A program made the position numbers and the translations under genes. 64,000 bases of DNA. Origin: Octopus sinensis. Taxonomy: Eukaryota. The stretch is from NCBI RefSeq assembly GCF_006345805.1, contig NC_043016.1, positions 23,994,001-24,058,000 on the forward strand, read 5' to 3'. Under the pieces are notes generated by a model. That model did no database searches and was not told the DNA's origin. It saw only the letters and a list, made by a program, of their open reading frames with translations. Positions 5,172-45,968 of this stretch are shown here, piece by piece (the first letter of the stretch is position 1; each line of letters opens with the position of its first letter).

Positions 5172-7279
5172 ATCTTCCACCCATGTTCAGGGTTGGGGGA
5201 GGTAGAAAAAAACTGCTAAATGTTAAATGGGGTTCCTTTTAAGTCCATAAGTTTAAACGTAGACGATTTGTTGTGACGCCTACTAGATGCTTGTTTTATC
5301 AAAAAGTTTTGTAAATGCTTAATTGTAAATTTAAGAGAAAAAAAGGAAAAAAAATGAACTCATGTGAGTGTTACTATGCACCAGTATGTGCAAAAGCACA
5401 AGTATGTGCATGGGATGTCTATTTTATTTACTGCTAATTTGTTTTTAAGACTAACTTTCTAAAAGTATGCTTCTGTTTTGAAGAACGTTTATATATATGT
5501 ATGTATGTATATATATCAATATATATATATATATACACATGTATATACACTTCGTATTTAATTTCAAATGATTGTTCTCTTATATAATCCACTAAAAAAA
5601 AATTAGGATATATAAACGGTAACATTTTTTCCTTTAAAAACATTTTCTAAGAATACTTCATATTTCTGTTAATGCTATGCTATTGTTACATCTGTTTGCA
5701 GTTTTTAAACATTTAAAAAAAAAACATCCCTCATTCATCAGTTCACAATGTAATATCTATTGAAAAAAAAAAAGAGAAAAGAATATATATATATATATTT
5801 ATATCCATACATACACACACCTATATATTATTTTCTTACTTTCGTCGAACCATCATTACGTTGTTATATAAAACATTTTTATACTCTTGGATTGTTCTGT
5901 ATATGTAGTAAAGGAAAATTCATAGATATATTAACTATGCTGTATCTATTTTCGTAGAGTTGTATATAATTAAAAAAAAAAAGAAAAACATTATAACATG
6001 TATATAAAGAGCAAACTTATATTGAGTTTGTCAATATGTTTTTATAGAAGTCGTTTTGTGTCTTGTTATTGTATTTTGCTCAATTCCTCATATTGATGTT
6101 TTATGCTCATTCAGAGTGTTGCATTTATCATTTTTCCTCTCTCTTTCTCTCGTTCTCTATAAATATTAACAAATGGTAATAATCGATACTGCATTTATAC
6201 GTGTCCATTCGACCCTTTTAACGCCCGTAAAGCATCCTATTTGCGTATTAAGAATTGCGCTATGATATTTGATAATTTTTGCAAGATATAATGCCTTAAG
6301 TATATGTTTAAAAACAAAATAAATATTGTATTCCATATTAATGTTCTATGATATAATCCAGATTTAATTGAAATCGCTATAAGATTTGTCCTACGTGCTA
6401 CGCAGCTTGGACCAGCTGATTTCTCTTTTCTTTCTTTTTTTTTTTCCTCGTCTAATGAAATATACATAATGGTGCAGGGAAGGAATCATTCTGGATCACG
6501 TTATTCAGATGCGCAATATTTTAGTCTCATTTATAATGAAAAAAGTTATTTATAATTGTAAGACAATCGCTTAGGTATGAAATAAAATGTAGATTTCGAT
6601 ATAAAGATCTTGTCTGTTGCTTCTAAGACCCATTCGTTTATGTGCATTTATCAAATGTATTAATTACTGGCAAAATGTAATAAAGATGAAAAGAAGAAAA
6701 TCGTTCACCAGAAATTATACATATTATACATGAAACTGTGTATTATATATGTAGCAAAAAAAAAAAAATGTGCATTTTACGTTGTAATAATATTGTTGCA
6801 TGTTCTTCGCACTTGAAAATTCATCAATCTGTGATAGGTGATTGAAACACGCTATAAGTGATTCATAAAATACTAAAGGTTATCATCTATCATCCATGTA
6901 AGTAGTGTGCAAAAATATAACATGTCCGATTTGTATTATTTTTATAATAGTAGTAATTAGGTGTTCCTGAATTTGTGTCAATTTATGCTTGTACTTCGAA
7001 CTACAAACACACTCGCTCTTTTTTCTTTTCTTGTTTTCTCTTTCGCACTTTGTTCCCCTCCCCACCCTTCTCTTTCTTTGCTTTTCTTTTCCTTTTTTTT
7101 TTTTTTTTTTTTTACAAATACACTTGTGTTGTGTGTGCTTGTTGCTGTTTACATTAAATAATTGGGGGATGGGGGGATATGTCCGTAATTCTAGTTTTCT
7201 TAATAGGATTTTTGCAACGTGAATAAAATCAATGAAAGGAAAATTGCTGCTATCAATTGTGATTGTGCGTTGTGGTGCA

Positions 7280-7664: not shown

Positions 7665-7805
7665 ATATAATATATATATATATATACGTTTTTTTTGTCA
7701 TTTTCACCCTTTCTCTTACTCTCATGTTCACATTCAACTTGCTAACTTTCTAATATCGTCGACGGCTACTTGAACTACCTACCTAACCAGGCTGGCTCAG
7801 CCCTA

Positions 7806-7968
7806 TCACCATCGCCACCACCGCCATCATCATCATTATTGCTACAACAACCACCACCACCGCCGTCGCCGTTATCATCATCATTCACCGTCTCACTCAG
7901 TCTCTCACTCACTCTTTCACTCACATACACACTCTCACTCTCTTTCATTACCTCTACTCTCATTCCAT
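7806..7968 (+). promoter_or_regulatory. Dense sense-strand YCAY cluster immediately upstream of the Nova start codon
   Basis: About 24 TCAT/CCAT/TCAC/CCAC tetramers in about 165 nt (hand count). YCAY is the established Nova/Pasilla binding motif. Confidence 0.55.
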
Positions 7969-8040: not shown

Positions 8041-8158
8041 ATGGCGATGAGTTTCGATGGCATGAATGGGTCAGATATGGACACATCCGACTCCCGAAAA
8101 AGACCCTCAGACGCCGAAAGTGATAGCGGGGTGACGAAGCGCTCAAACCAAGGCGGAG
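8041..8158 (+). CDS. Nova: Nova coding exon 1 ([39 protein letters not shown]), includes putative NLS RKRP
   Basis: ATG in AAGATGG context with an in-frame upstream TAG at 8032-8034. DSRKRP...TKR matches the Nova N-terminus. Phase-1 donor GAG|GTTAGA at 8159 fits the phase-1 acceptor at 41366. Too short for the ORF track. Confidence 0.88.
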
Positions 8159-10536: not shown

Positions 10537-12203
10537 ATTTGTACAGTAAATGTTAAAGAATATTGGAATATCGAGAAAAAAAAAAAGCGAAAAGAATATA
10601 TCTAAATGTCCTGTTATAAGTAATTTTTGTAAATTTTCATTATGAAAGAAGTGTGGTTGTCCTTCTTGGTGTTCCGTACGGGACAGATAGAGATTAGTTT
10701 GTCATTCAAAAGTGTGTGTGTGTCATAGGATGGTTGTTGGACCTTTTTGATAATTCTGACACAAGTAAAGCAATTCGTATTCTTGGCTGGATTATTTAAA
10801 ACCATTTGTTCTATATTTAAGATTTTTTTTCCTTCTTTAATATCAATTAAATTTATATTTTCTGTGTGTATGTGTGAAATAAATCCTTCAGATATGTCGG
10901 TGAACTAGATGACTATGTTGTATGATCCTGTATTGACTTTTATATAACTACAGTCAATAGTTAGAAACCTCTCCATCTTTGCATTTTTATATCGGCTTGT
11001 GTGCCCCTCCCACCTTTACTCCAATCCCTTCCGAGATGTAATTGTTCATAGATCCACTCCACCCCCTAATTATTAAAGTTCTAAGCTATTAGTGCGTTCT
11101 GCCAATAAACCGAATACGTGCGCGCGCGCGTACGTGCACGTTCTCAATTCATTTTGAATAGTTCCTATAAATTAATTTCAGCTGTGAATTATAACGATCA
11201 AAAGAATAAAGGATATATATATATAATGCTTAATTTTTTTTAATGTAGAAGGATTTTCAAATACAAAATATGCTCAGGAAAACGAAGGTTTAAGATTTAC
11301 TAAAGTCGACATTTTATCGAATTATAAATGTACGATGAACATGTATCGTTTTAGAGCCGATATTTTATGGCAATCTTTAGAAGATGGTATTTCAGCGACA
11401 TGCAAGAGAAGAAAAGAAGAAAAAAAAACCCTCATTCGGATATCTCGTTCTGAATATTACGTATGACAGGCAGAACTATATATAGCAATGAATTCGGAGT
11501 ACGCGATTCAGACAGCCTGAAGGTGGGAGCCGACATCACTTCGCATTGCGCAAAAAAAAAAAAAAAAAAATGACTCGACTCGACCTACATACTTCCGTCT
11601 ATAATATTGAAGACAACAACCTTTTCGATAGATGTGAGCTAGCAAGTTTTCCTGCATGGAGAGGTATTATCTTGCCTTCTTCGGAGTTAGGAAATTTGAG
11701 GTTTATAATTTTATTACATATAACACTTAGTGATTTTAACGGGTTTCTCTTGATTATCCATCCTGTTTAGTGCTCGTTGGATTGGATGGATAGCTAAACA
11801 GATAGCTAGGTAGATAAATGATCGCAAATGTATGTAGGACTTGTGTGGCCACGTCGTAACAAGAGCAACACCCACTGACACAGCTAACGTGATGTCTAGC
11901 TATCACTTGTAGACATTTCTTTTGCTAATGCGGACACGTGTCAATTAATATCAAGTATTCTTTTTAATAATTTTGTATTATATTTGGATGTTGAGACAGT
12001 TTGCTCTCTACATTCTTTAAGTCGAACTATATATATATATATATTTAACCGATCGGTATTGTATTGCTGCTTCGTCTGTTGATCATGTCAGAACAAGTAT
12101 AACGATGGCTACGTATGGCACATCTGATATATCTACACCCGAACTACCAGGTATCTGATATCTACCTCTCTACATCGCCCCTCCTTATTTGTCTCATTAT
12201 ATA

Positions 12204-15500: not shown

Positions 15501-18500
15501 AAAAATATTGCATTTTATAATCACAATATATTAACCAGCTTTTTAGATTGTTTGGTCTCAATTATTTTAGTAAACATATTTTCAACATATGCTTATAGTC
15601 GGTTCTGGGTTCAGTCTCACTTCATGACTCCCTGGGCAAGTGTCTTCTACTATAGTTTCAGGCCAATCAAAGCGTTGTGAGTGGATTTGGTGGATGGAAA
15701 TCCTGTGTTTTTGTGTATGTTCTCCACCTCCACTTGAGAACTGGTGTTCAACAAAAAAGACTGGTAGAATAAGCATCAGGCTTAAAAAAGAAAAAGAGGA
15801 CTGGGGTTGATTCATTCAACTAAAATTCTTCAATGCAGTGCCCCAGCATAGCTGCAGTTCTAATGACTGAAACAAATGAAAGAATAATATAAAGAAATAC
15901 ATGACTGATCAGTTGTTGTTGAAATAACAATCGGTCTCATACTTAGGATGAAACCTTTTTCTTTTCAATTTTCACATATATGTTCTTCAGTTTCATATCT
16001 GTTGACCATTAGGTGTCTTATTTGTACCGGGCCAAATTAAGAGTAGGAATCTTCATTTCTAAATTATGGAAGTAATGTCGTTATCTACCATATTGCTGAC
16101 ATATGTTCCCATTGATTGAGAAATAAGGATTCTTGTTTGAATCCAAGAATAAGTGGTTGGTGATAAAGAGATATGTACTGTGTATAAATCTTAGAGTGTA
16201 AGTGATTTAAAAAGAAAACTGGGTATATGACGCATTAGATGTTGAGAGGACTATGCTGGTTTGGCCATGTGATGAGAACGGATGGGGATAGCTGCATAAA
16301 GAAGTGTCAATCTAATTGTGGAAGGAGTAGATGTGGGATGAAGTGAGAAAGTATCTTCTGTATAGAGGAAGAGCAAAACTGGAAATCTGGGAACATTGAT
16401 GATAGATTTAGGATCTTTGTTGTTCTAAACAAACTTCAAGGAAATTAAAAAAAAGACCTTGATAAAATTTTTGTGGAATAGTATGAAATTAACTGTCAAG
16501 GTTTTGCTGTGTTCACTTAAATTTTGATTTAACAGGTGGTATTTATATTGTTACACATCATCATCATCGTTGTTTAATGTCTGCTTTCCATGCTGGCATG
16601 GGTTGGACAGTTTGACTGAAGGCTGCACCAGGCTCCAATCTAATCTGGCAAAGTTTCTACTGTTGGATGCCCTTCCTAATGACATGAAATTGTCTGAAAT
16701 ATCCTCATCTCAGTTTTTTTCTTATTTGCTATCAACACTTGTTTAAAGTTTAACTACAATGTCATTGTATGTACATGTGTATGTACACACACACACACAT
16801 TATGGTTAACCTTTCTGCCAATTTTGGCATCGTTTTAATAGAATAAACTATGAAAATAAATCTAGATATATGTAATGTATAAATTCAACTTAAACTAGAA
16901 ACCTTATTTGTAAATCAGTAGTAACATATGTCAGTGGCTGGCAAATAAACGCAATATTCCCTTAGTTCAGAAATTGTTTGCTCATAGGAAGTGCTTGATA
17001 AATGATAGAATATTCAGGCTAAGATGTAACATAGGCTATTTTATTCCATTGCACATTGTCTTTGACTTACACAATTTGACAAATTGAATTCAGTGTTAAA
17101 AGAAGTTACAAATTACCATGTCTTTGTAGTTTATATAAAAATGCCAGTGATATAATTTTTTGTTGAAATTTTTACTTATTAATATTAAAGCTTGGTTTCA
17201 AAGGATAAGGGCATTACAAACTATTTTGCATTAAATTTCATCTTCTGTAAAAAAAAAAATCCTACATTTTGCTCAATTTATATTAATTTCTCAATTAGTT
17301 GGAAATTGAGGTTTTTCGTAAAGATATTTTGTGAACTTGAAATAAATATTGTTACCCTTTTGTAGCTCTTTACTTGTTTATTTCTAGGTACTATTGGGAC
17401 ACCTGATGACTACAGCTGTGAATATAAATCTGATTCAGGTAGGTTGACTAATCTTTACACACACACACACACACACACAAGTGAATAAAAGTTATACATA
17501 TATGTGTGTTTGTAAATATATTTGTATACATGTTTATGTATATGAATGTATTATGTTCATGTGTAATCTGTGTGTATATGTATGTGTGCATATTTGTTAT
17601 GTGTATGTGTGTATATGTGTGAATATGTATATATGTTTGTGTATGTGTGTGTGTACATTTATATACATGTGTGTGTGTACATTTATATACATGTTAAATG
17701 TGATTGTATGTATATATATACACACACATACTCACAAATAGACATGAACTACGTATATTTGATAATTAGTTCTGACTTAACATGAAATTATCAATATTCT
17801 GTCTTGTATCCTGTTAACTTAGCATTGTCAAAAAGTTGCATTTGTGAATATGCATTTTTTCCGCTCCCCCATTTTGTACAATTTCAACTATCATTCATTG
17901 CTAGTTTACATTAACATTGCAATCATCTGTTCATTTGCTTTTCATTAATTAACTAAAATTTCATATTTCATTGATATTGCCAGAATTGAATTTCCGAATT
18001 TTTATTATGAAGAAACAAAAAATATCCAAAGCAAGAATTTTAATTTCATTCCTCCCAGTTGAAGATGGGATTCATTCTTTTCTTTTTTTTTTTTATCAAA
18101 TTCATTTTAACAGATTGACTGTGGAAATATTCCTAGAATCTGAAATTTCATCACATTTCATGAAAATGTTTGCTAAATCTAAAAATATAACTGCTTTTCT
18201 TAGAATTACATAAGGATTATTGTAGAGCTTTAGTTAGAACAAAATCCAGAGAAGTTATTTTCACAAGTTTAAGGATGAATATGAATTTTAAATATGGTTA
18301 TTTCTAATTCTTACTTTACTAGTTATGCCAGATTGATCAAATGCATGCAATTATTCCTATACTAAAACATTTCACTTAAAAAAAATTTTTTTTTACCAAG
18401 TTTGTTTGCTCTTCTTGCATTTTCCATCAAAATTCACAACTGATTTATAGAATTTCTACCAGTTAAGCATTATTAATATTGGGCTTGTTTTTGTAAAAAT

Positions 18501-33800: not shown

Positions 33801-36800
33801 ATGGATTAGAAGTTAAATACACAAAATGACTTCATCTGAATTTACAGTGTTTACATTTAACAATTTTGAACTACTTAAAATCACAAGGTCATGCGTTATA
33901 AGGGATTACATCGAGAATATAACTTGCAATTAAGTTCATGTGTTACCAGAATCGTGTGGTTTGTGCATTTAAATTAAAACTTGCAAAAGTCATTGTCATC
34001 ATATAAGATAAAACTTCATCAAACTGTGGTAACGGTAAAAGAAATAAACTTACTCTAGTAATATATAACTACCCATTATGAAAACCATGTTTCATGCTTG
34101 CATAAAAATATAGATTTTTAAAACAATAAATGAATTGAAATCTACATAAATCTTAACATTTATTGACATGATATTCATGTTTAGGATCATTTCATTTCAT
34201 CTCATTTGATATTTTCCTTTCTAGTTGTGTGTGCATATTTTCAAATCAAACTAGTTCATTGTTAGAAATATTTGATTTTAATAAAACATTAAATATATTT
34301 GACAAATATTTCTATAAAATATTGAAATTTTTAAGAATTTTTTTATCGTATAAATTAATTGAAATACCTTATACAAATTGCTAAAATATTGAATATTGAT
34401 ACTTTCATGGTTTTCTGCCAGAACATTGCTTTCTTCACTTTTCAAAATGTTTTTTTTTAATGGTTGCTTGTATTGGTCTATTTAATGTTTTAAAAATATA
34501 TATATAAATTATATATATACATTATTTATATATATATATACATAATTTTTTAGTATATTATCTAAATTCTAATATATTGAAATAGTAAAAATTACTAAAT
34601 CATATCAGTACTTTATTAGAAAATGATTCTTTACAGCACTTAGAAATTCTTCCTTTGTGGATGGCAAACCATTAACTTTTAGATTGTAGGAATTTAATGG
34701 TGTAATAAATTAGCATGGTTTAAAATTTAGTATTAAAGGTAAGAAAAAAAAAATAGGATATAAGTTTTCTAGTTTTGTTACCATATTTACTATAAAAACG
34801 TCAACTTTGTAGTAGTATTAGGGGGTCAGATATTGATGTTCCATACTGTTTATATTTCTACTAGTGTGGAAAGTGCACAACTTGTGTGGATAACTATTCA
34901 AAAAAGAGAGGAAAAAAATCTACAGCAATAGTGCCAATCAATTGCTTTAAGCCATCTTTCAGAGATGAATGAACAAAGATTTATTATAATTAATTTTAAT
35001 TTGCTTTTAAGTTTCATTTAATTCTCTGTTTATTTATTCAATTTTCCTTTTCTCTTGGCTCACCTTGGTACAACTCTGTGATGCCTGTTATATTAGATGA
35101 AATACAATAACCATGCTACTGCTGGTAATATAATTCTGAAAACTTCTGGCTTCAGTATCTTAGCAGTTAGCTTAGATATCTTTTAAAGTCTTCCATATAG
35201 AAGTTATATTTTAATTGTATATTATGAAGATACTTTGGTAGGAAAATGGGAATGGATTTAGGAAGTTATTGAAGCCAGTCTTTCTGAATTATTTTTTATA
35301 TTACAATAATATTTAGGAATGCTGCTGTTGAGTACCTATTTTGAGGAGATTAGATTATAATAGCAGCACTATTCCTCACTTTATGCATATACAAGATGCA
35401 TAAAATATCATTCATTTGAACTCTATTTACTTCTTTCTCTCCACTTTTCTTTTTACTCTTCCTCTCTTTTTTTTTTTTCTTCTTAGTTGGTTCAAATTTC
35501 CATCTTCGACAGTTTTAATCCGGGTAACAATTTGTATCCAAATGATGCATAATAGTGTAGACATTTATAGAAACAAACATTTATAGATTTTATTTAAATT
35601 AGGCTGAAAGTTCCACTCAATGGTATCTTGATAGGTATTGAAAGTCAGGTCTGGGCACCCTCATATGCATACGAAGATTGTCAACCCGGGGACGAACCGT
35701 TGAGACATAATATGATGGCTTCTCTTCAAATTTGGCACAAAAACCAAGGTGAGCCATGAATGCATTGCTTTGATTTTTCCCATAGCCAAATTTTTCATTT
35801 GTTCTCATTACAATATCTGTCAGGAGAATGATGTCACTTGCCAAATTTAGCATAATTCTATTTTGTGAACGAGTGGATAAAACATGCATGTCTTAAATAA
35901 CTTTTTAAAAAATGGTAAAATCAAACATATCCATGCTTTTTGTTTGTGTCTAACATTAAAGTTTCAGGTGGCTGATTCTGGACATCACTGTTACTTTTGT
36001 CCTTTTCCCTTCGGTGTCCATTTATTCCCATGCAAAATTTTGCCTGGCTTGATTGGAAATTTGCGATTATCATTTTTTCAAGGCATTTATGTAATGAGAT
36101 TTCAGAAAAACTTTTAATGCTTTAAGCCCTTGCCTAGCCTTCCTCTTTAGTGGCTATTAGATTCTTTATTTCTCAAATTGACAGCACTATCCTTATACAT
36201 TTATGGCCATTGCTTGTTGCACACCTGTAATCTAATTTTTTTTTTTCATTCGAAAGTTACAGTATTGTATTCTAGATTTAGTATTCCTTTTCTGTATTTA
36301 CTAACAAATTTTATTTTTCCTTATATACATTCATTAGTTTACTCAATTTTACACCAGATACACTTTTAATTTTATTATATATAGTTTAGATGGTTTTGAA
36401 CTGCTTCTAACAGTGATAGCAGTATGTGCAAGTTCCAGTGTTTATAAGTGTTCATTTAAGTAGATATCCTTAGCAGTGAGGGTTGAGACCTTCAAAACTT
36501 AGAGCAAGCCATAAATAACTAATGAATATGTTGGTTCCAGCGTCTCCCCACAAGCCTATATCTTTATTTTTAATGATATTGGGTTTCATACATTCTATGT
36601 AACTGAAAAATTTTCTCAGGATAATCACTGGATCTTAATGTAACATATTTTGCTTTATGACTAATGTAATTAAAATATGAGAATAGTTGTGAAGCAGTTT
36701 TTTTATGGAATAAAAATAATGTACAATTTGTGATAGGAAAGATTTGCTTGTGAATCTTGTTTTCACTGCTAAAAATCAAAGAATAACATCTATTACAAAC

Positions 36801-40888: not shown

Positions 40889-43310
40889 GTGAATTCTTTG
40901 GGCATATTTTTCAAACATTCAATTGGACTTTTAAAAAATTACTACTTAACACATTTACGTTTTGCTGCCTAAAGAAAAGAATTCTTAAATATTTCAATCT
41001 TGTCAGTATTAACTTGCATTTTATATTTTTACTATTAATGCTCAAAACGTAGTTTATCCTTTTAATTAGTGAAGTTTGCAGTTACATTTTTGTCTTTTCT
41101 ATTTAATGTTTGAGTGTTTTAAAATGACTTTACATTTTTTAACCATAAAAATATTGTTTAAAAATTATGCAGTGTTTTTTCTTCTTTAAACAGTAATTTT
41201 TTTTTTGTAAGCATTAAAAAAATGTTTCAAAGATGAATTACAGATATTATTAATGTGAAATTTTGTTAGTGTATTGTATTAAAGATAACTTGTTCATCTT
41301 AAGGGTGGGGAGATTTGATAAAATTTTGAATAGAAATTATTAAAGGTAAATTAATTTTTATTACAGGGGAGAATGTCCACCTTAAGATTTTAGTTCCAAG
41401 TGCAGCTGCTGGAGCCATTATTGGCAAAGGTGGAGAGACAATTGCACAAGTGCAGAAAGATGCAGGAGCCAGAGTAAAGATGTCGAAAGCTAATGATCAT
41501 TATCCTGGTAACTATTTTCTGTTTGTGAGGACTAACACATTTTTAGGTTATTAGCTGAGAAGTGGGGGGCATTATAATTAACAAATGAAGACATCTGGAT
41601 GAATGTAGTGAGTGTTTACAATGATTGTCTATTTTATTATCTTCTAGTCAAATAAAAGAATTATGAAAATGTTTTAGATAACTGATGTGGCAAATATCTT
41701 ACTTTGACTAGTTTAAGTTGAGAAATAACTGATTTTAACTATAATTTGGTATGTCTTGGTGTTGTGTGTGTGTGTGTATGTATGTATAAAAGCTAATCTG
41801 TATTAAAATTGAATATGTAGACCTAAGTTGTAAATTTTTTGCATGTTTGTTTTTTTTTTTTTGGCAAATTTAAATTGGACTTAGTTTAATGATATCTTAA
41901 TGTATTTGCATTATTTATTGCTTAAAATATTTAATTATTTTCTGTGTATGAATAGCATATTTTCTTCTCTTTAAAATCATTTTATGTCATAAAAATTGGA
42001 ATATATTGAGGAGGCACCACATTTTGGTGATTTATTTTATTTATTAGATTAACAGTTTGTTATTTAAAAAAAATTTCCAGGGACATCCGAACGAGTGTGT
42101 CTTATAACTGGTTCAGTTGAAGCTGTTAGGAAAGTCCATACTTTTATTATGGAAAAAATCAGGGAAAAACCAGAACCTAACCCCAAATTAGATGAAAATA
42201 AAAGTACCTATGAACGGCACCGGCAGGTAATAATGTTATAAATTTTCTTTTATATTATACATATATATATATACACAAATATATATATATACACACAATA
42301 TGCACATATATATATACATATTTATGCACATTATATATACTCACATTTGTATATACATGTTTATATATATACATTTATAAATGTGTGCATATAATTATCC
42401 CCTTTGTGTGTGAGTGTGCGTGTGTACATATATAGTTTAGAGATGTATTTAAAGTAAATAAAATCTATGAAGACTTAATTTTAATTTTTCATATTTTTGT
42501 CTACATACTTTAATTAATTTGTGTAACTGAGAAAAAATTGGAGGAAGTGCATGAAACTGAGGAAAATCTATTCTTAGTTACCTAAGCATCTTCCTTTCCA
42601 ATTTGATTGAGTCGAATCTTTTGGAATTTCTGATATATTTGAAAGTAGATTAATAATATTGTTAAATTATATTTAACTATAGTTTTTGTTCATTTTGCTT
42701 TTTCATTTTGTTAATGCTACTAAATCAGTGGTCAGAATTAGCTCTTCTACCTCCAACCCAGGCAGCAAGAGCCCTTTATTAAATAGGCTGTCTGATAGGC
42801 TGCTATTTCCAAACTATAAAGTTTCTCTTACATCACCTTCTGATCTGCTCACTTTCCTTACTTTTTGTACATACTGAAATCCCAAAATAGGTTAAAAAGA
42901 AATCATTCTTACTTTCAGACAATAGATTTAGCTGCTCCAACCCAATTTGACAGGCTCCAGCCCTCTGATAGTCTAGAACCATTTTTACAGGTCAGAGAGT
43001 CCTTTGAACTTTTTGAAACCGCTAAGGTCAAGTTTTGGCCTTTTTATTTACATATGGCTGGACATTTTGTTTCAGTATTCAAGGAAATTGAAATTGTATT
43101 CCAAACCATTTATTGATGGTAATAAATGTTCAAATAAATATATAATATATATTTTGATCTAGCTCTGAATGTATAGGAAGTTCTTACTAAAGTATGTTTA
43201 CTGTGGATGAGAACTCATTTTTATATATTTAGAAATGTTAAACATTACTATATTTTAGTACAAAAATTCTTAAGGATGACTTTATTTGGAAATTAAGCAT
43301 GTTATTTAAG

Positions 43311-43341
<31 letters not shown>

Positions 43342-45968
43342 TTATATATATATATATATACACACATACATATATTAGCTGGTTTTTACATGATGATCAG
43401 GTCACTGCTGCCTCCTCTTTCCAACTGCATTCAGCATGTCCAAATTAATTTAGCATTTACCTGTTTCATTTTTAAGGCTAAGACAGTTCTGCATTTTATA
43501 ATAAATAACTGTTAACCACATTTGTTTGATTTGGTCCTTGATTTAGTAATGAATTATAGTTAGTTTGTTTTTTATACAGTTTGAACATTAGTCAACTAAA
43601 GATATGAAATTGTCTTATAGTATGTTATACTAATGAAATATTTATTCAAATCTCTCCAAAAATTTGCTGATAATTTTTAATTTCACAAAAAAAAAAACCT
43701 GTGGTTAACTAAATAAAAATAAGAATTTTATTAAAAAAGTTTTTCTTAAATATTTTAAAATGTAACAGACAATAGATCATTTTTAACAAGATTAACAATT
43801 TAAATTTGGTTTGATACATATAAAGTCATTCATTTTGATCATAAAAAAATCATAATTAATTTGTAACTGAATCAAAATTAAAGCTATTTATGTATTTATT
43901 ATCTAATGCTCCATGTTTGTTTTTAATTATTAATTGTTGTTTTACCAATGTTTTCAGGTGAAAATCTTAGTCCCTAATAGTACTGCAGGAATGATAATTG
44001 GTAAAGGTGGCATTTATATAAAACAAATTAAGGAGGAAAGTGGAGCGTATGTGCAGATATCTCAAAAGTCAAAAGAAACAAATTTGCCAGAACGCTGTGT
44101 AACAGTTGCAGGTGAGTGCAGCCTTGTTTTAGTGTGTTTATTGTATTTTGAATTATTGTTTGAAACTGAATTTGTGACTAGGAAACAAGTTCTCTTGTGT
44201 AGTATTATTTTTAATTTTGTGCATGTATTATGAAATTGTTTGACATTTTGAAAGCTGTGTTTTGCTGTAGTGTTTTGAATTAAAACATTGTGAACTTGAT
44301 GATTTGTTGTCTTGGGCAGATTTTTACTAGTGACCATCCATCTATAATAAAGTTGGACTCTTTTCTTTTTATAAATTACATTGCATTTGTTATTTAGTTG
44401 CCATAAGCCTATTTATTATATTTATATTGCAAATGACTTTGGTATATTTATCACTAAAATTTATAAACCATTCTATATTTAAATACTTAATAGGGTGTTG
44501 GGGGGTAAATTATGAATTTCTAAGAAATTTGTTTATCTGTTCCGGACTCTGCATTTGTTGCTACTGAATATTTCTTGTCATCTTGACTTAGAAAAACAGC
44601 TCCTAAATATTTTTATTAAATGTTTAGTATGTAGCCCTATATTATCTATTTTAGTAACTTGGCTGAAATGTTAATACATTCATTGTTTAGAAAATTATTG
44701 TAAATAAGGTAGTTTTTGTTTAATACTTTTTCTTAAATTTTAGTTAGTCTAAACTGTTTTTTTTTTCCATTTTTTTTTTCCTTCTCAATCTTTGTTTTGT
44801 AGGTGATGTTGAGTCCAACAGAAGAGCTGTTGACATGATATTACAGAAGATTGTTGAAGATCCTCAAAGTGGAAGCTGTCCAAATATCAGTTATGCAGAT
44901 TACACAGGACCAGTGGCCAGTGCTAATCCTACCGGGTCCCCTTTCGCTAACACGGACTATATACAAAACAGAAGTACAGAGATAGGATTAGCTAATAATA
45001 ACTTTGGTGCTTTTGGTTTTGGTTTTAATGGAAATGCCTTTGGAAACAATATAGGAGCTAGCATGACGAATCTGAACTTGAATGCAGCTTTAAGTGGTGG
45101 CACTAGTAATAGCATTAACAGTACAGCTTTGGATAACATAAAAATAACTCTGCGAGGAAATGGATTTTCAGATCAAGCAACCGAAGAAATAAGTACTGCC
45201 ATGAACACTTTAGCTAGCTATGGTATATTAGCTAGTATGGGTTTAGGAATGGGCAGTTTGAATAATTTGGCAAACTTAGGAACTGGAAGCGGTCTAGGAA
45301 CAGGACTGAATCTTAATTCATCTGGCTTGCAAGGCTCTAGCATGATGTCAAGTAGTACAACTTCAACCACAAGTGTGAGCAGCCCTTTCTTTAACACTAC
45401 CACCAGTACTAACAGTGCTGGTAGCCTTTTTGGTCCAGTTGGCAGTGGGTCATCCGGATTAGGAAGTTCAGGCTCCACTGGAGCCAACTCTAGTCTTTTC
45501 AGTAATTCCTCTCCTAGTATTGGCAACGAAAGATATGGGGGAAGTCCAATGCTTAATGATTCATTTGGCAATGCTGCTAATTATCCCAGCAATCCTGGGT
45601 TCACTGGAACTCCAAGCATAGCTGGCGACAGGTCTCCTAATGTTAATCAAAATTCTTTTGGCCTCGGAACTGGCATCTATAGCCCTGCTGATGACAAATC
45701 AGCCCCGGCAACTAAGCAAGAGATGGAGGTTCCGGAGACAATTGTTGGAGCTATCCTGGGACCTGGCGGGAAAGGCATCGTGGAAATACAACAGTTCACG
45801 GGCACCAACATTCAGATTTCAAAAAAAGGAGTCTATGTACCTGGTACCCGTAATCGTGTTGTCACCATAACTGGTACTCCTAACAACATTTCCAAAGCCC
45901 AGTTATTTATCCAGCGGCGCCTCCAGCAAGAGGAAATGAAGAGGGCTCGTCAAGCTTCTACCCGTTAG
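8041..45968 (+). CDS. Nova: Nova/pasilla-family triple-KH RNA-binding protein, spliced CDS join(8041..8158,41367..41507,42081..42226,43958..44111,44803..45968), 574 aa
   Basis: Exon lengths 118+141+146+154+1166 = 1725 nt give 575 codons with no internal stop. All introns are GT-AG, with phases 1,1,0,1. The translation has the Nova N-terminal SRKRP motif, KH1 ([18 protein letters not shown]), KH2 ([18 protein letters not shown]), the Nova-typical [28 protein letters not shown] and NTLASYG motifs, and KH3 ([34 protein letters not shown]). Confidence 0.95.
15601..15885 (+). mobile_element. tRNA-derived SINE, internally deleted
   Basis: ggttctgggttcagtc..ctgggcaagtgtcttctactatag..gtgagtggatttgg..ctggggttgatt..aatgactgaaacaa, homologous to 25143-25526. 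Confidence 0.85.
16195..16350 (+). mobile_element. Short degenerate RTE RT C-terminal fragment
   Basis: gctggtttggccatgtgatgagaa..gatagctgcataaagaagtgtcaa resembles 1050-1170 and the reverse complement of 2330-2420. Confidence 0.6.
16556..16683 (-). mobile_element. RTE/SINE 3' tail, reverse orientation
   Basis: Reverse complement of 40-190 (catcatcatc..tttccatgctggcatgggttggac..ggatgcccttcctaa). Confidence 0.8.
17388..17438 (+). CDS. Candidate 51-nt symmetric (phase 1-1) cassette exon in Nova intron 1 ([17 protein letters not shown])
   Basis: Pyrimidine-rich acceptor ctctttacttgtttatttctag, donor CAG|GTAGGT. Length is divisible by 3, there is no stop in the Nova frame, and GC is higher than the flanks. 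Confidence 0.5.
20505..20511 (+). other. Candidate 7-nt microexon (GAATATG)
   Basis: Sequence is ccctgtccttgttatag|GAATATG|gtaagta: near-consensus donor and a reasonable acceptor, flanked by YCAY motifs. Confidence 0.3.
23900..23953. repeat. 27-bp perfect tandem duplication (tcaatgctatagatattccagtaccat x2)
   Basis: Directly visible. Confidence 0.9.
24561..24925 (+). mobile_element. Degraded tRNA-derived SINE with RTE-like tail
   Basis: gtgtggttaaaaagtttgct..gttcagtcc..ggcaagtgt..tttgtgagtg..ggcaacaggaaaagcatccagc..aacccac. Confidence 0.7.
25143..25526 (+). mobile_element. Near full-length tRNA-derived SINE
   Basis: A/B-box-like 5' head (ggagtggctgtgtg..ccgggttcagt), central (AT)/(GT) microsatellite, and a 3' end aatgactgaaacaagtaaaagag. 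Several homologous copies lie in the window. Confidence 0.9.
27350..27505 (+). mobile_element. Second SINE family copy
   Basis: gagttcatatccc..tcaactttgcctttcatccttt..gactc homologous to 58011-58160. Confidence 0.7.
35635..35748 (+). CDS. Candidate 114-nt symmetric cassette exon or alternative first exon ([38 protein letters not shown])
   Basis: Strong donor AAG|GTGAGC at 35749 in phase 1. The Nova-compatible frame is open from 35598 to 35756, and the segment is a local GC/CpG island. Acceptors at 35634 (114 nt) or 35602 (146 nt) are weak to moderate. Confidence 0.42.
38203..38207 (+). other. Candidate 5-nt microexon (GTGGG)
   Basis: Sequence is gtatttttcttgtgtag|GTGGG|gtaagtc: strong acceptor and perfect GTAAGT donor. 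Confidence 0.3.
38537..38800 (+). mobile_element. Degraded tRNA-derived SINE
   Basis: cttgcttctcgaccacatg..gggttcagtcccactgtgtggcac..ggcaagtgt..gagtggattt. Confidence 0.8.
41367..41507 (+). CDS. Nova: Nova coding exon 2, first half of KH1 ([48 protein letters not shown])
   Basis: Acceptor tttttattacag|GG, donor CTG|GTAACT, 141 nt, GxxG loop (GKGG). Confidence 0.95.
42081..42226 (+). CDS. Nova: Nova coding exon 3, second half of KH1 plus linker ([49 protein letters not shown])
   Basis: Acceptor aatttccag|GG, donor CAG|[19 protein letters not shown] matches Nova KH1. Confidence 0.95.
42919..42990 (+). CDS. Candidate 72-nt phase 0-0 cassette exon between KH1 and KH2 ([24 protein letters not shown])
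   Basis: Acceptor tcattcttactttcag, donor CAG|GTCAGA. 24 codons, open in the Nova frame. Confidence 0.45.
43958..44111 (+). CDS. Nova: Nova coding exon 4, most of KH2 ([52 protein letters not shown])
   Basis: Acceptor gttttcag|GTG, donor CAG|GTGAGT. Lies inside ORF-track entry 43934..44233. Confidence 0.95.
44803..45968 (+). CDS. Nova: Nova terminal coding exon: end of KH2, long G/S/N/T-rich linker, KH3, stop TAG
   Basis: Acceptor tttgttttgtag|GT at 44802, in frame with the 377-aa ORF 44835..45968. Confidence 0.96.

Follow-up and report, generated by a model that had tools for sequence, protein, structure and literature searches.

In vertebrates, Nova has a central part in regulating neuron-specific splicing, and it provides a textbook example of autoregulation in the control of its exon 4. 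The DNA analysed here, a window of 64,000 nucleotides (nt) of AT-rich animal sequence from the Octopus sinensis reference genome (NC_043016.1, positions 23,994,001 to 24,058,000), contains the octopus orthologue Nova-1, and the intron between its KH1 and KH2 exons holds a 72-nt open segment at the position and of the length of vertebrate NOVA1 exon 4. The locus raises the question of whether this segment is an exon at all and, if it is, whether it shares its origin and its mode of control with the vertebrate exon. The evidence indicates that the segment is a real alternative exon in the KH1-KH2 linker, frame-preserving and probably regulated, and that it most likely originated within octopods, independently of vertebrate exon 4.

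The cassette comprises 24 codons in phase 0-0, with frame 0 as the sole open frame, and is flanked by two phase-0 introns between ..ERHRQ and VKILVP. The acceptor (tcttactttcag/ACA) is clean, and the donor (CAG/gtcaga) carries a suboptimal C at position +3. This anatomy is as described in a first-pass annotation made from the sequence alone, as is the location of the exon in a locally GC-richer block: GC content is 0.374 in the island at 42725-43120 and 0.431 in the cassette, versus approximately 0.22 in the remaining intron. Taken alone, these sequence features are within chance, because the same intron holds 31 AG...GT segments of at least 45 nt that are open in frame 0, and the shorter-threshold count in the cuttlefish intron described below is 10 (at least 15 nt). 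The cassette is nevertheless real, since the exact peptide is found in RefSeq isoforms and the island around it is approximately 98% identical in Argonauta. Ten isoform models of O. sinensis Nova-1, members of the protein cluster, are present in RefSeq, and nine of them (X1-X3 and X5-X10) include the exact peptide of 24 amino acids (aa), while X4 skips it; X1 (653 aa) and X4 (629 aa) differ solely in this segment. The skipped junction is also present in independent gene models from O. vulgaris (CAI9734609.1) and Argonauta hians (GAB1604532.1). As had been proposed, the KH1-KH2 linker contains a true alternative exon; it is already annotated in RefSeq, so the exon itself is no discovery. What is new is its conservation pattern, its restricted distribution, the vertebrate parallel and the missing Nova-type motif signature; a literature search found no paper describing the octopus cassette.

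Conservation of the cassette was assessed by alignment of the octopus intron with the A. hians locus (L010, 37.6 kb). Identity between the two species reaches 97.8% over an island at 42796-43117, compared with 93.5% in the KH2 exon and 61-64% in the other parts of the intron, and the island is 100% identical in O. vulgaris. Within the cassette, 70 of the 72 nt are identical in Argonauta, the differences being one synonymous change and the substitution F10Y, which leaves 23 of 24 residues unchanged, with no change to the reading frame or to either splice site. In the whole-gene alignment, the alignable parts are mainly exons, along with the short introns beside KH1b and KH2 and a 3' region past the stop codon. 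Flanks conserved to the degree of coding sequence are the usual signature of a regulated exon, suggesting that the sequences on either side of the cassette have a regulatory role. The cassette frame also remains open beyond the exon, for 90 codons in total (42844-43113), from 25 codons 5' of the acceptor to 41 past the donor, and for 89 codons in Argonauta, a marginally unusual length (P = 0.033 versus shuffles). If the donor were skipped, 40 more sense codons would be read, or 41 when the TGA stop is included.

The distribution of the cassette outside Octopus and Argonauta was examined in genomic contigs and in annotated proteins. Orthologous exons, 85-89% identical at the nucleotide level, are present on seven contigs from public read assemblies (L001-L007). 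One of these (L001) is 100% identical to another (L007), whose source run, ERR12945500, is Acanthosepion esculentum according to the cuttlefish genome preprint. The complete intron of this cuttlefish (896 nt, L001 2932-3827) contains no nucleotide or peptide counterpart of the cassette and no plausible cassette of its own. Conservation among coleoids, to which the first-pass annotation had tied its proposal, is found in Argonauta and O. vulgaris and not in the cuttlefish. The Q/V junction was then surveyed in 137 Nova proteins and in approximately 95 further mollusc isoforms (oysters, scallops, clams, abalone, limpets, whelks, Aplysia and chiton), and among these annotated isoforms, which include bivalves, gastropods and chiton, the 24-aa octopus cassette is not present outside octopods. 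The mollusc isoforms possess junction variants of 1-5 aa only: +VTVIN or +VTLLN in venerid and dreissenid bivalves, +VE, +VS or +VIE in gastropods, +FDSFQ in chiton and +Q in scallops, and +VTE is also among the variants surveyed. The V-initial inserts look like the products of downstream alternative donors rather than separate cassette exons. Crustaceans exhibit unrelated inserts of 9-10 aa, namely +ISRSARSPQ in decapods and +NWTEKTRPPQ in krill.

These other protostome inserts (decapod, krill, bivalve, gastropod, chiton and scallop) resemble the octopus cassette in that they lie at the same Q/V junction, change the length of the KH1-KH2 linker and are annotated in isoforms with and without the insert, but they differ from it in their length of 1-10 aa and in their unrelated sequences. 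Judged from these sequences, bilaterians have repeatedly varied the length of the linker at the phase-0 Q/V intron. Invertebrate deuterostomes are absent among the matches listed, and phylogenetic continuity between the octopod and vertebrate exons was not found. The distribution suggests that the exon arose in octopods after the decapodiform split (or was lost in cuttlefish) and before Octopus and Argonauta separated. Two Nova-1 models from O. bimaculoides (P0122 and P0250) lack the KH1b exon, such that ..HYPG-NYFLF.. runs directly into KH2; they look mis-modelled and uninformative on the presence of the cassette in that species.

The cassette resembles the vertebrate exon in position and size. 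Annotated vertebrate isoforms, from shark to birds and mammals, read ..NPDRIKQ/VKIIVP, with or without TLPSSPTTTKSSPSDPMTTSRANQ inserted, in agreement with the 24-aa exon at the Q/V junction that the first-pass annotation had described. The two exons share an orthologous host gene, the same ancestral phase-0 intron between ..Q and VK(I/L)(I/L)VP, and a frame-preserving length of 72 nt and 24 aa; both are alternatively included at the level of gene models, and each is very strongly conserved inside its own clade. The claimed equivalence of position and length is thus correct. The shared host intron, phase and length, along with the T-initial, Q-final and PSD-containing form of both peptides, are the features expected if the cassette were an orthologue of NOVA1 exon 4 inherited from the bilaterian ancestor, lost in most lineages and diverged past recognition. 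A predicted insert in medaka nova2-like also contains PSDSIE, similar to PSDSLE in octopus (uncorrected P = 0.004, chosen post hoc among approximately 30 variants). Peptide similarity between the cassette and exon 4, however, is at chance: the local BLOSUM62 score against human is 22 versus a shuffle mean of 17.8 (P = 0.16), the comparison with frog gives P = 0.56, and a gapless alignment contains 3 identities in 24 positions. The compositions are also unlike, as the octopus peptide is acidic and hydrophobic with four S and T residues and a net charge of approximately -3, whereas exon 4 is an S/T/P-rich phospho-acceptor tract with 12 S and T residues and a net charge of +1. A terminal Q is what any CAG/GT donor yields in phase 0. 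Furthermore, the cassette is limited to octopods: neither the cuttlefish intron nor the annotated isoforms of many molluscs and arthropods contain it, and its distribution is not continuous with that of the vertebrate exon. Exon 4 is nearly invariant from shark to human, comparable to the 23 of 24 residues retained between Octopus and Argonauta, and this slow evolution within each clade makes a complete erosion of similarity under common descent unlikely. Descent from a shared bilaterian exon is consequently a very improbable explanation, and the peptide and distribution data make an independent origin of the octopus cassette most likely. Of the two origins that had been offered for the resemblance, convergence is favoured over deep homology.

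The mode of control can be considered alongside two further explanations of the conserved block. Very strongly conserved alternative exons in genes for RNA-binding proteins are often auto- or cross-regulated, which would favour a switch in which octopus Nova-1 binds YCAY motifs at its own cassette and represses or enhances its inclusion. According to one article (PMC4191425, citing Dredge 2005), Nova1 of mouse and rat causes its own exon 4 to be skipped, and in mammals that exon is flanked by YCAY motifs (PMC5343574). The first-pass annotation had pointed to a few YCAY motifs upstream of the cassette as a hint of this; five are present (42690, 42703, 42833, 42849 and 42903), but at background density. 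YCAY counts are below or near expectation throughout, with 5 observed versus 7.6 expected in the island, 1 versus 1.1 in the exon and 20 versus 27.8 in the whole intron, and the motif count revealed no YCAY cluster in the island, where the maximum is 2 per 45 nt. Four TCAT motifs do lie within 45 nt at 43826-43850, approximately 110 nt upstream of the KH2 exon acceptor. This group is half conserved, with TCATTCAT alone kept in Argonauta, and a density of 4 YCAY per 45 nt is reached by approximately 1.3% of positions in this AT-rich sequence. Nova autoregulation through YCAY is, on these motif counts, without sequence support at the cassette and is rather unlikely to be how the exon is controlled. 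The octopus cassette is therefore akin to NOVA1 exon 4 in position and size, while peptide homology, phylogenetic continuity and the YCAY autoregulation signature are all lacking from the sequences compared. A function of the island other than splicing, for example as an enhancer within the intron or as a non-coding RNA, with the exon incidental or a case of noisy splicing caught by the annotation pipeline, is consistent with conservation that reaches well into the non-coding flanks and with a 72-nt open AG...GT segment being statistically unremarkable alone. Conservation is centred on the exon, however, with its frame and splice sites kept in Argonauta; nine of ten RefSeq isoforms include it; an Rfam scan of the intron gave no match inside the island; and folding is no more stable than that of shuffled sequences (z -0.16 and -0.60). 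Such a function is a very unlikely source of the conservation. Octopus genomes are rich in repeats and the GC content of the block is unlike that of the surrounding intron, as would be expected had the exon been recruited from a transposable element or dispersed repeat. A second copy of the block is nonetheless absent from the 64-kb window and from sites other than the orthologous one in the 37.6 kb of Argonauta and 43.4 kb of O. vulgaris (L011) sequence, approximately 81 kb together, confirming within this sequence that the block is not dispersed. Purifying selection at approximately 98% identity over 320 nt is also unlike a decaying repeat, and an origin from one can be given hardly any credence.

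The preferred reading, a regulated octopod exon of independent origin, is itself subject to several points that weigh against it. Motifs for Rbfox, MBNL, PTB, CELF, QKI, Sam68 and Tra2, as well as U-rich motifs, are not enriched in the island. Expression of the cassette rests on gene models, and among the public read assemblies represented in the protein collection there is no contig of a spliced octopus Nova-1 transcript. Cuttlefish is the one decapodiform lineage sampled, and loss there, instead of gain in octopods, may account for the distribution. Lastly, the conservation compares two diverged octopod sequences at approximately 98% identity, at which coding constraint and constraint at the RNA level are inseparable.

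Several candidate elements in the intron were considered and rejected. A diverged tandem copy of the exon was suspected at 42732-42810 on account of the colinear 10-mers CTCCAACCCA, AGA(A/T)TTAGCT and TCTGATAG, but was rejected because the local alignment to the exon is non-significant (an equal or higher score is reached by 138 of 1000 shuffles and 11 of 195 genomic controls) and because the open frame changes in a non-coding-like manner in Argonauta (3 of 4 changes non-synonymous). Sub-threshold Rfam matches to mir-297, mir-466 and mir-3149 are located outside the island, in (TA/CA)n tracts at 42240-42400 and 43300-43376; these tracts are simple repeats with numerous matches across the Argonauta and O. 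vulgaris loci, and were discounted as microRNAs. An RNA structure that loops out the exon is unsupported, given a folding energy that is ordinary versus shuffled sequences. Nested inverted repeats, TCACTTTCCTT/AAGGAAATTGA and ATACTGAAA/TTTCAGTAT, bracket the cassette (Table 1).

If the cassette is regulated as proposed, its control would be exerted through the conserved flanks. The suboptimal donor and short polypyrimidine tract fit an exon that depends on regulators for its inclusion, and the intron on either side, almost unchanged over approximately 125-190 nt, is presumably bound by trans-acting splicing factors. Inclusion would add 24 acidic and hydrophobic residues to the flexible KH1-KH2 linker, whereas skipping would leave the linker as it is in other bilaterians, ..ERHRQ/VKILVP... 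In an AlphaFold2 model built from an 11-sequence alignment, the predicted local distance difference test score (pLDDT) is below 50 at residues 118-156, a stretch comprising the linker and the greater part of the cassette (135-158), and reaches 70-89 in the KH domains. The insert is thus predicted to be disordered and part of a flexible linker, which the cassette would both lengthen and acidify, and RNA binding may be altered as a result. The exon would have been born in the octopod lineage in the same ancient phase-0 intron that separately yielded NOVA1 exon 4.

To our knowledge, no other animal lineages have brains as large as those of octopods and vertebrates. The octopod cassette, along with the junction variation in crustaceans and molluscs, suggests that the KH1-KH2 linker is a recurrent evolutionary control point of Nova activity. 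It is a tentative and somewhat doubtful extension of this that octopods and vertebrates, each separately, placed a 72-nt cassette in the same Nova intron, where it would act as a switch, regulated by tissue, that changes linker length or modification and retunes the splicing of target transcripts. Were this true, a master splicing factor of neurons would have evolved in parallel at the molecular level, with an octopod regulatory code that is not YCAY-based. The 320-450-nt island, the 24-aa insert and the two isoforms offer a handle on the independent elaboration of neuronal splicing networks in cephalopods. Very strongly conserved alternative exons are also known from vertebrate SR and hnRNP genes, which resemble the octopus case in that the host encodes an RNA-binding protein and the flanking intron is conserved to at least the degree of the neighbouring coding exons. 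The classic SR and hnRNP exons, however, are mostly poison exons that lead to nonsense-mediated decay, whereas the octopus cassette preserves the frame and alters the protein.

A discrepancy was observed in the structural record of the vertebrate protein. The Nova-1 KH1/KH2 chain in PDB entries 2ANN and 2ANR reads ..NPDRANQVKIIVP and fits neither natural isoform. This had suggested that the vertebrate exon boundaries as given in the first-pass annotation were wrong, a possibility ruled out by the annotated skipped isoforms; because these natural isoforms read ..NPDRIKQ/VKIIVP, the crystallised 2ANN construct must, from its sequence, carry an engineered deletion. Inserts occupy this junction in some predicted vertebrate NOVA2 isoforms too, among them two from turtles, whose 24-aa inserts are S/P-rich and Q-final, and several from fish, in which the insert is 12-29 aa long.

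Three Nova paralogues are apparent in octopods: Nova-1, a 'Nova-2-like/Pasilla' protein of 556 aa and a divergent 'Nova-1-like' protein of 551-567 aa. The third is represented by CAI9731936.1 in O. vulgaris, XP_029644249.1 in O. sinensis and GAB1605062.1 in Argonauta, where the gene (L012) spans 3.4 kb with approximately three exons. This paralogue, like Nova-1 with its cassette, has an extra 25-28 aa at the same linker position (IIRRSSTISNSSTTTSGSLDGTFMH or IPKRSSSTLSSSSSSTGTSVSLEGALHH), but the segment is S/T-rich, and the gene model for Argonauta places it in one piece with the KH2 exon rather than in a separate cassette. Homology of this insert to the cassette (SVSLEGALHH versus SDSLEPFLQ) was rejected, as the similarity is at chance (P about 0.4).

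The identity of the host gene and its remaining features were established across the window. Positions 4315-46968 are 100% identical to CM016878.1:23998315-24040968 of O. sinensis assembly GCA_006345805.1, and O. vulgaris exhibits 99.5% identity over the same interval. A combination of tblastn and gene modelling recovered a complete Nova/pasilla orthologue, Nova-1, on the + strand, with three KH domains in the order KH1-KH2-spacer-KH3. In a protein search, the shared parts of the spliced product are 100% identical to O. sinensis Nova-1, and the product shares 66-69% identity with mollusc Nova/Pasilla proteins bearing Pfam KH_1 matches. The coordinates of all features are given in Table 1.

Table 1. 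Features of Nova-1 in the window, with nucleotide identity between Octopus and Argonauta where aligned
Feature	Position	Strand	Octopus/Argonauta identity	Basis or remark
Alternative first coding exon	5315-5365	+		RefSeq isoform segment, 100% match
Main first coding exon	8041-8158	+		ATG at 8041; N-terminus matches O. sinensis isoforms X1, X4 and X6
Alternative first coding exon	11570-11662	+		RefSeq isoform segment, 100% match
Alternative first coding exon	12105-12149	+		RefSeq isoform segment, 100% match
Alternative exon A (intron 1, 17 aa)	17387-17437	+		100% tblastn match to RefSeq isoform segment
Alternative exon B (intron 1, 38 aa, GIESQVW...IWHKNQ)	35634-35747	+		100% tblastn match
KH1a exon (first half of KH1)	41367-41507	+		tblastn and gene model
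KH1b exon (second half of KH1 and linker), constitutive	42081-42226	+	97.3%	tblastn and gene model; ends ..ERHRQ
Left part of intron	42227-42724		60.6%	
Conserved upstream intronic flank	42725-42918	+	95.4%; 98.4% over 42796-42918 (last 123 nt)	Short polypyrimidine tract and acceptor; presumed splicing-regulatory sequence
Inverted-repeat arms	42849-59/43081-91			In minimum-energy fold; arms invariant between species
Inverted-repeat arms	42871-79/43070-78			In minimum-energy fold; arms invariant between species
Cassette exon (72 nt, phase 0-0, 24 aa in KH1-KH2 linker)	42919-42990	+	97.2%	Translation, RefSeq isoforms, Argonauta conservation
Conserved downstream intronic flank	42991-43199	+		GTCAGA donor; presumed splicing-regulatory sequence
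Downstream flank	42991-43117		97.6%	
Outer downstream flank	43118-43199		84.3%	
Rest of intron	43200-43957		64.4%	
KH2 exon, constitutive	43958-44111	+	93.5%	tblastn and gene model; starts VKILVP
Last coding exon (low-complexity spacer and KH3)	44803-45968	+		Stop TAG 45966-45968

Three alternative first exons and the cassettes A and B sit in or ahead of the 33-kb first intron. Exon B is included in some RefSeq isoforms and left out of others, and both A and B show conservation in Argonauta, at 93% for A and 83% over approximately 800 nt around B. YCAY is at its densest in the window (8 per 45 nt) at approximately 7792-7960, in a CT/CA-rich low-complexity tract (ctcactcac...) immediately upstream of the main first exon; this tract probably belongs to the 5' untranslated region or the promoter.

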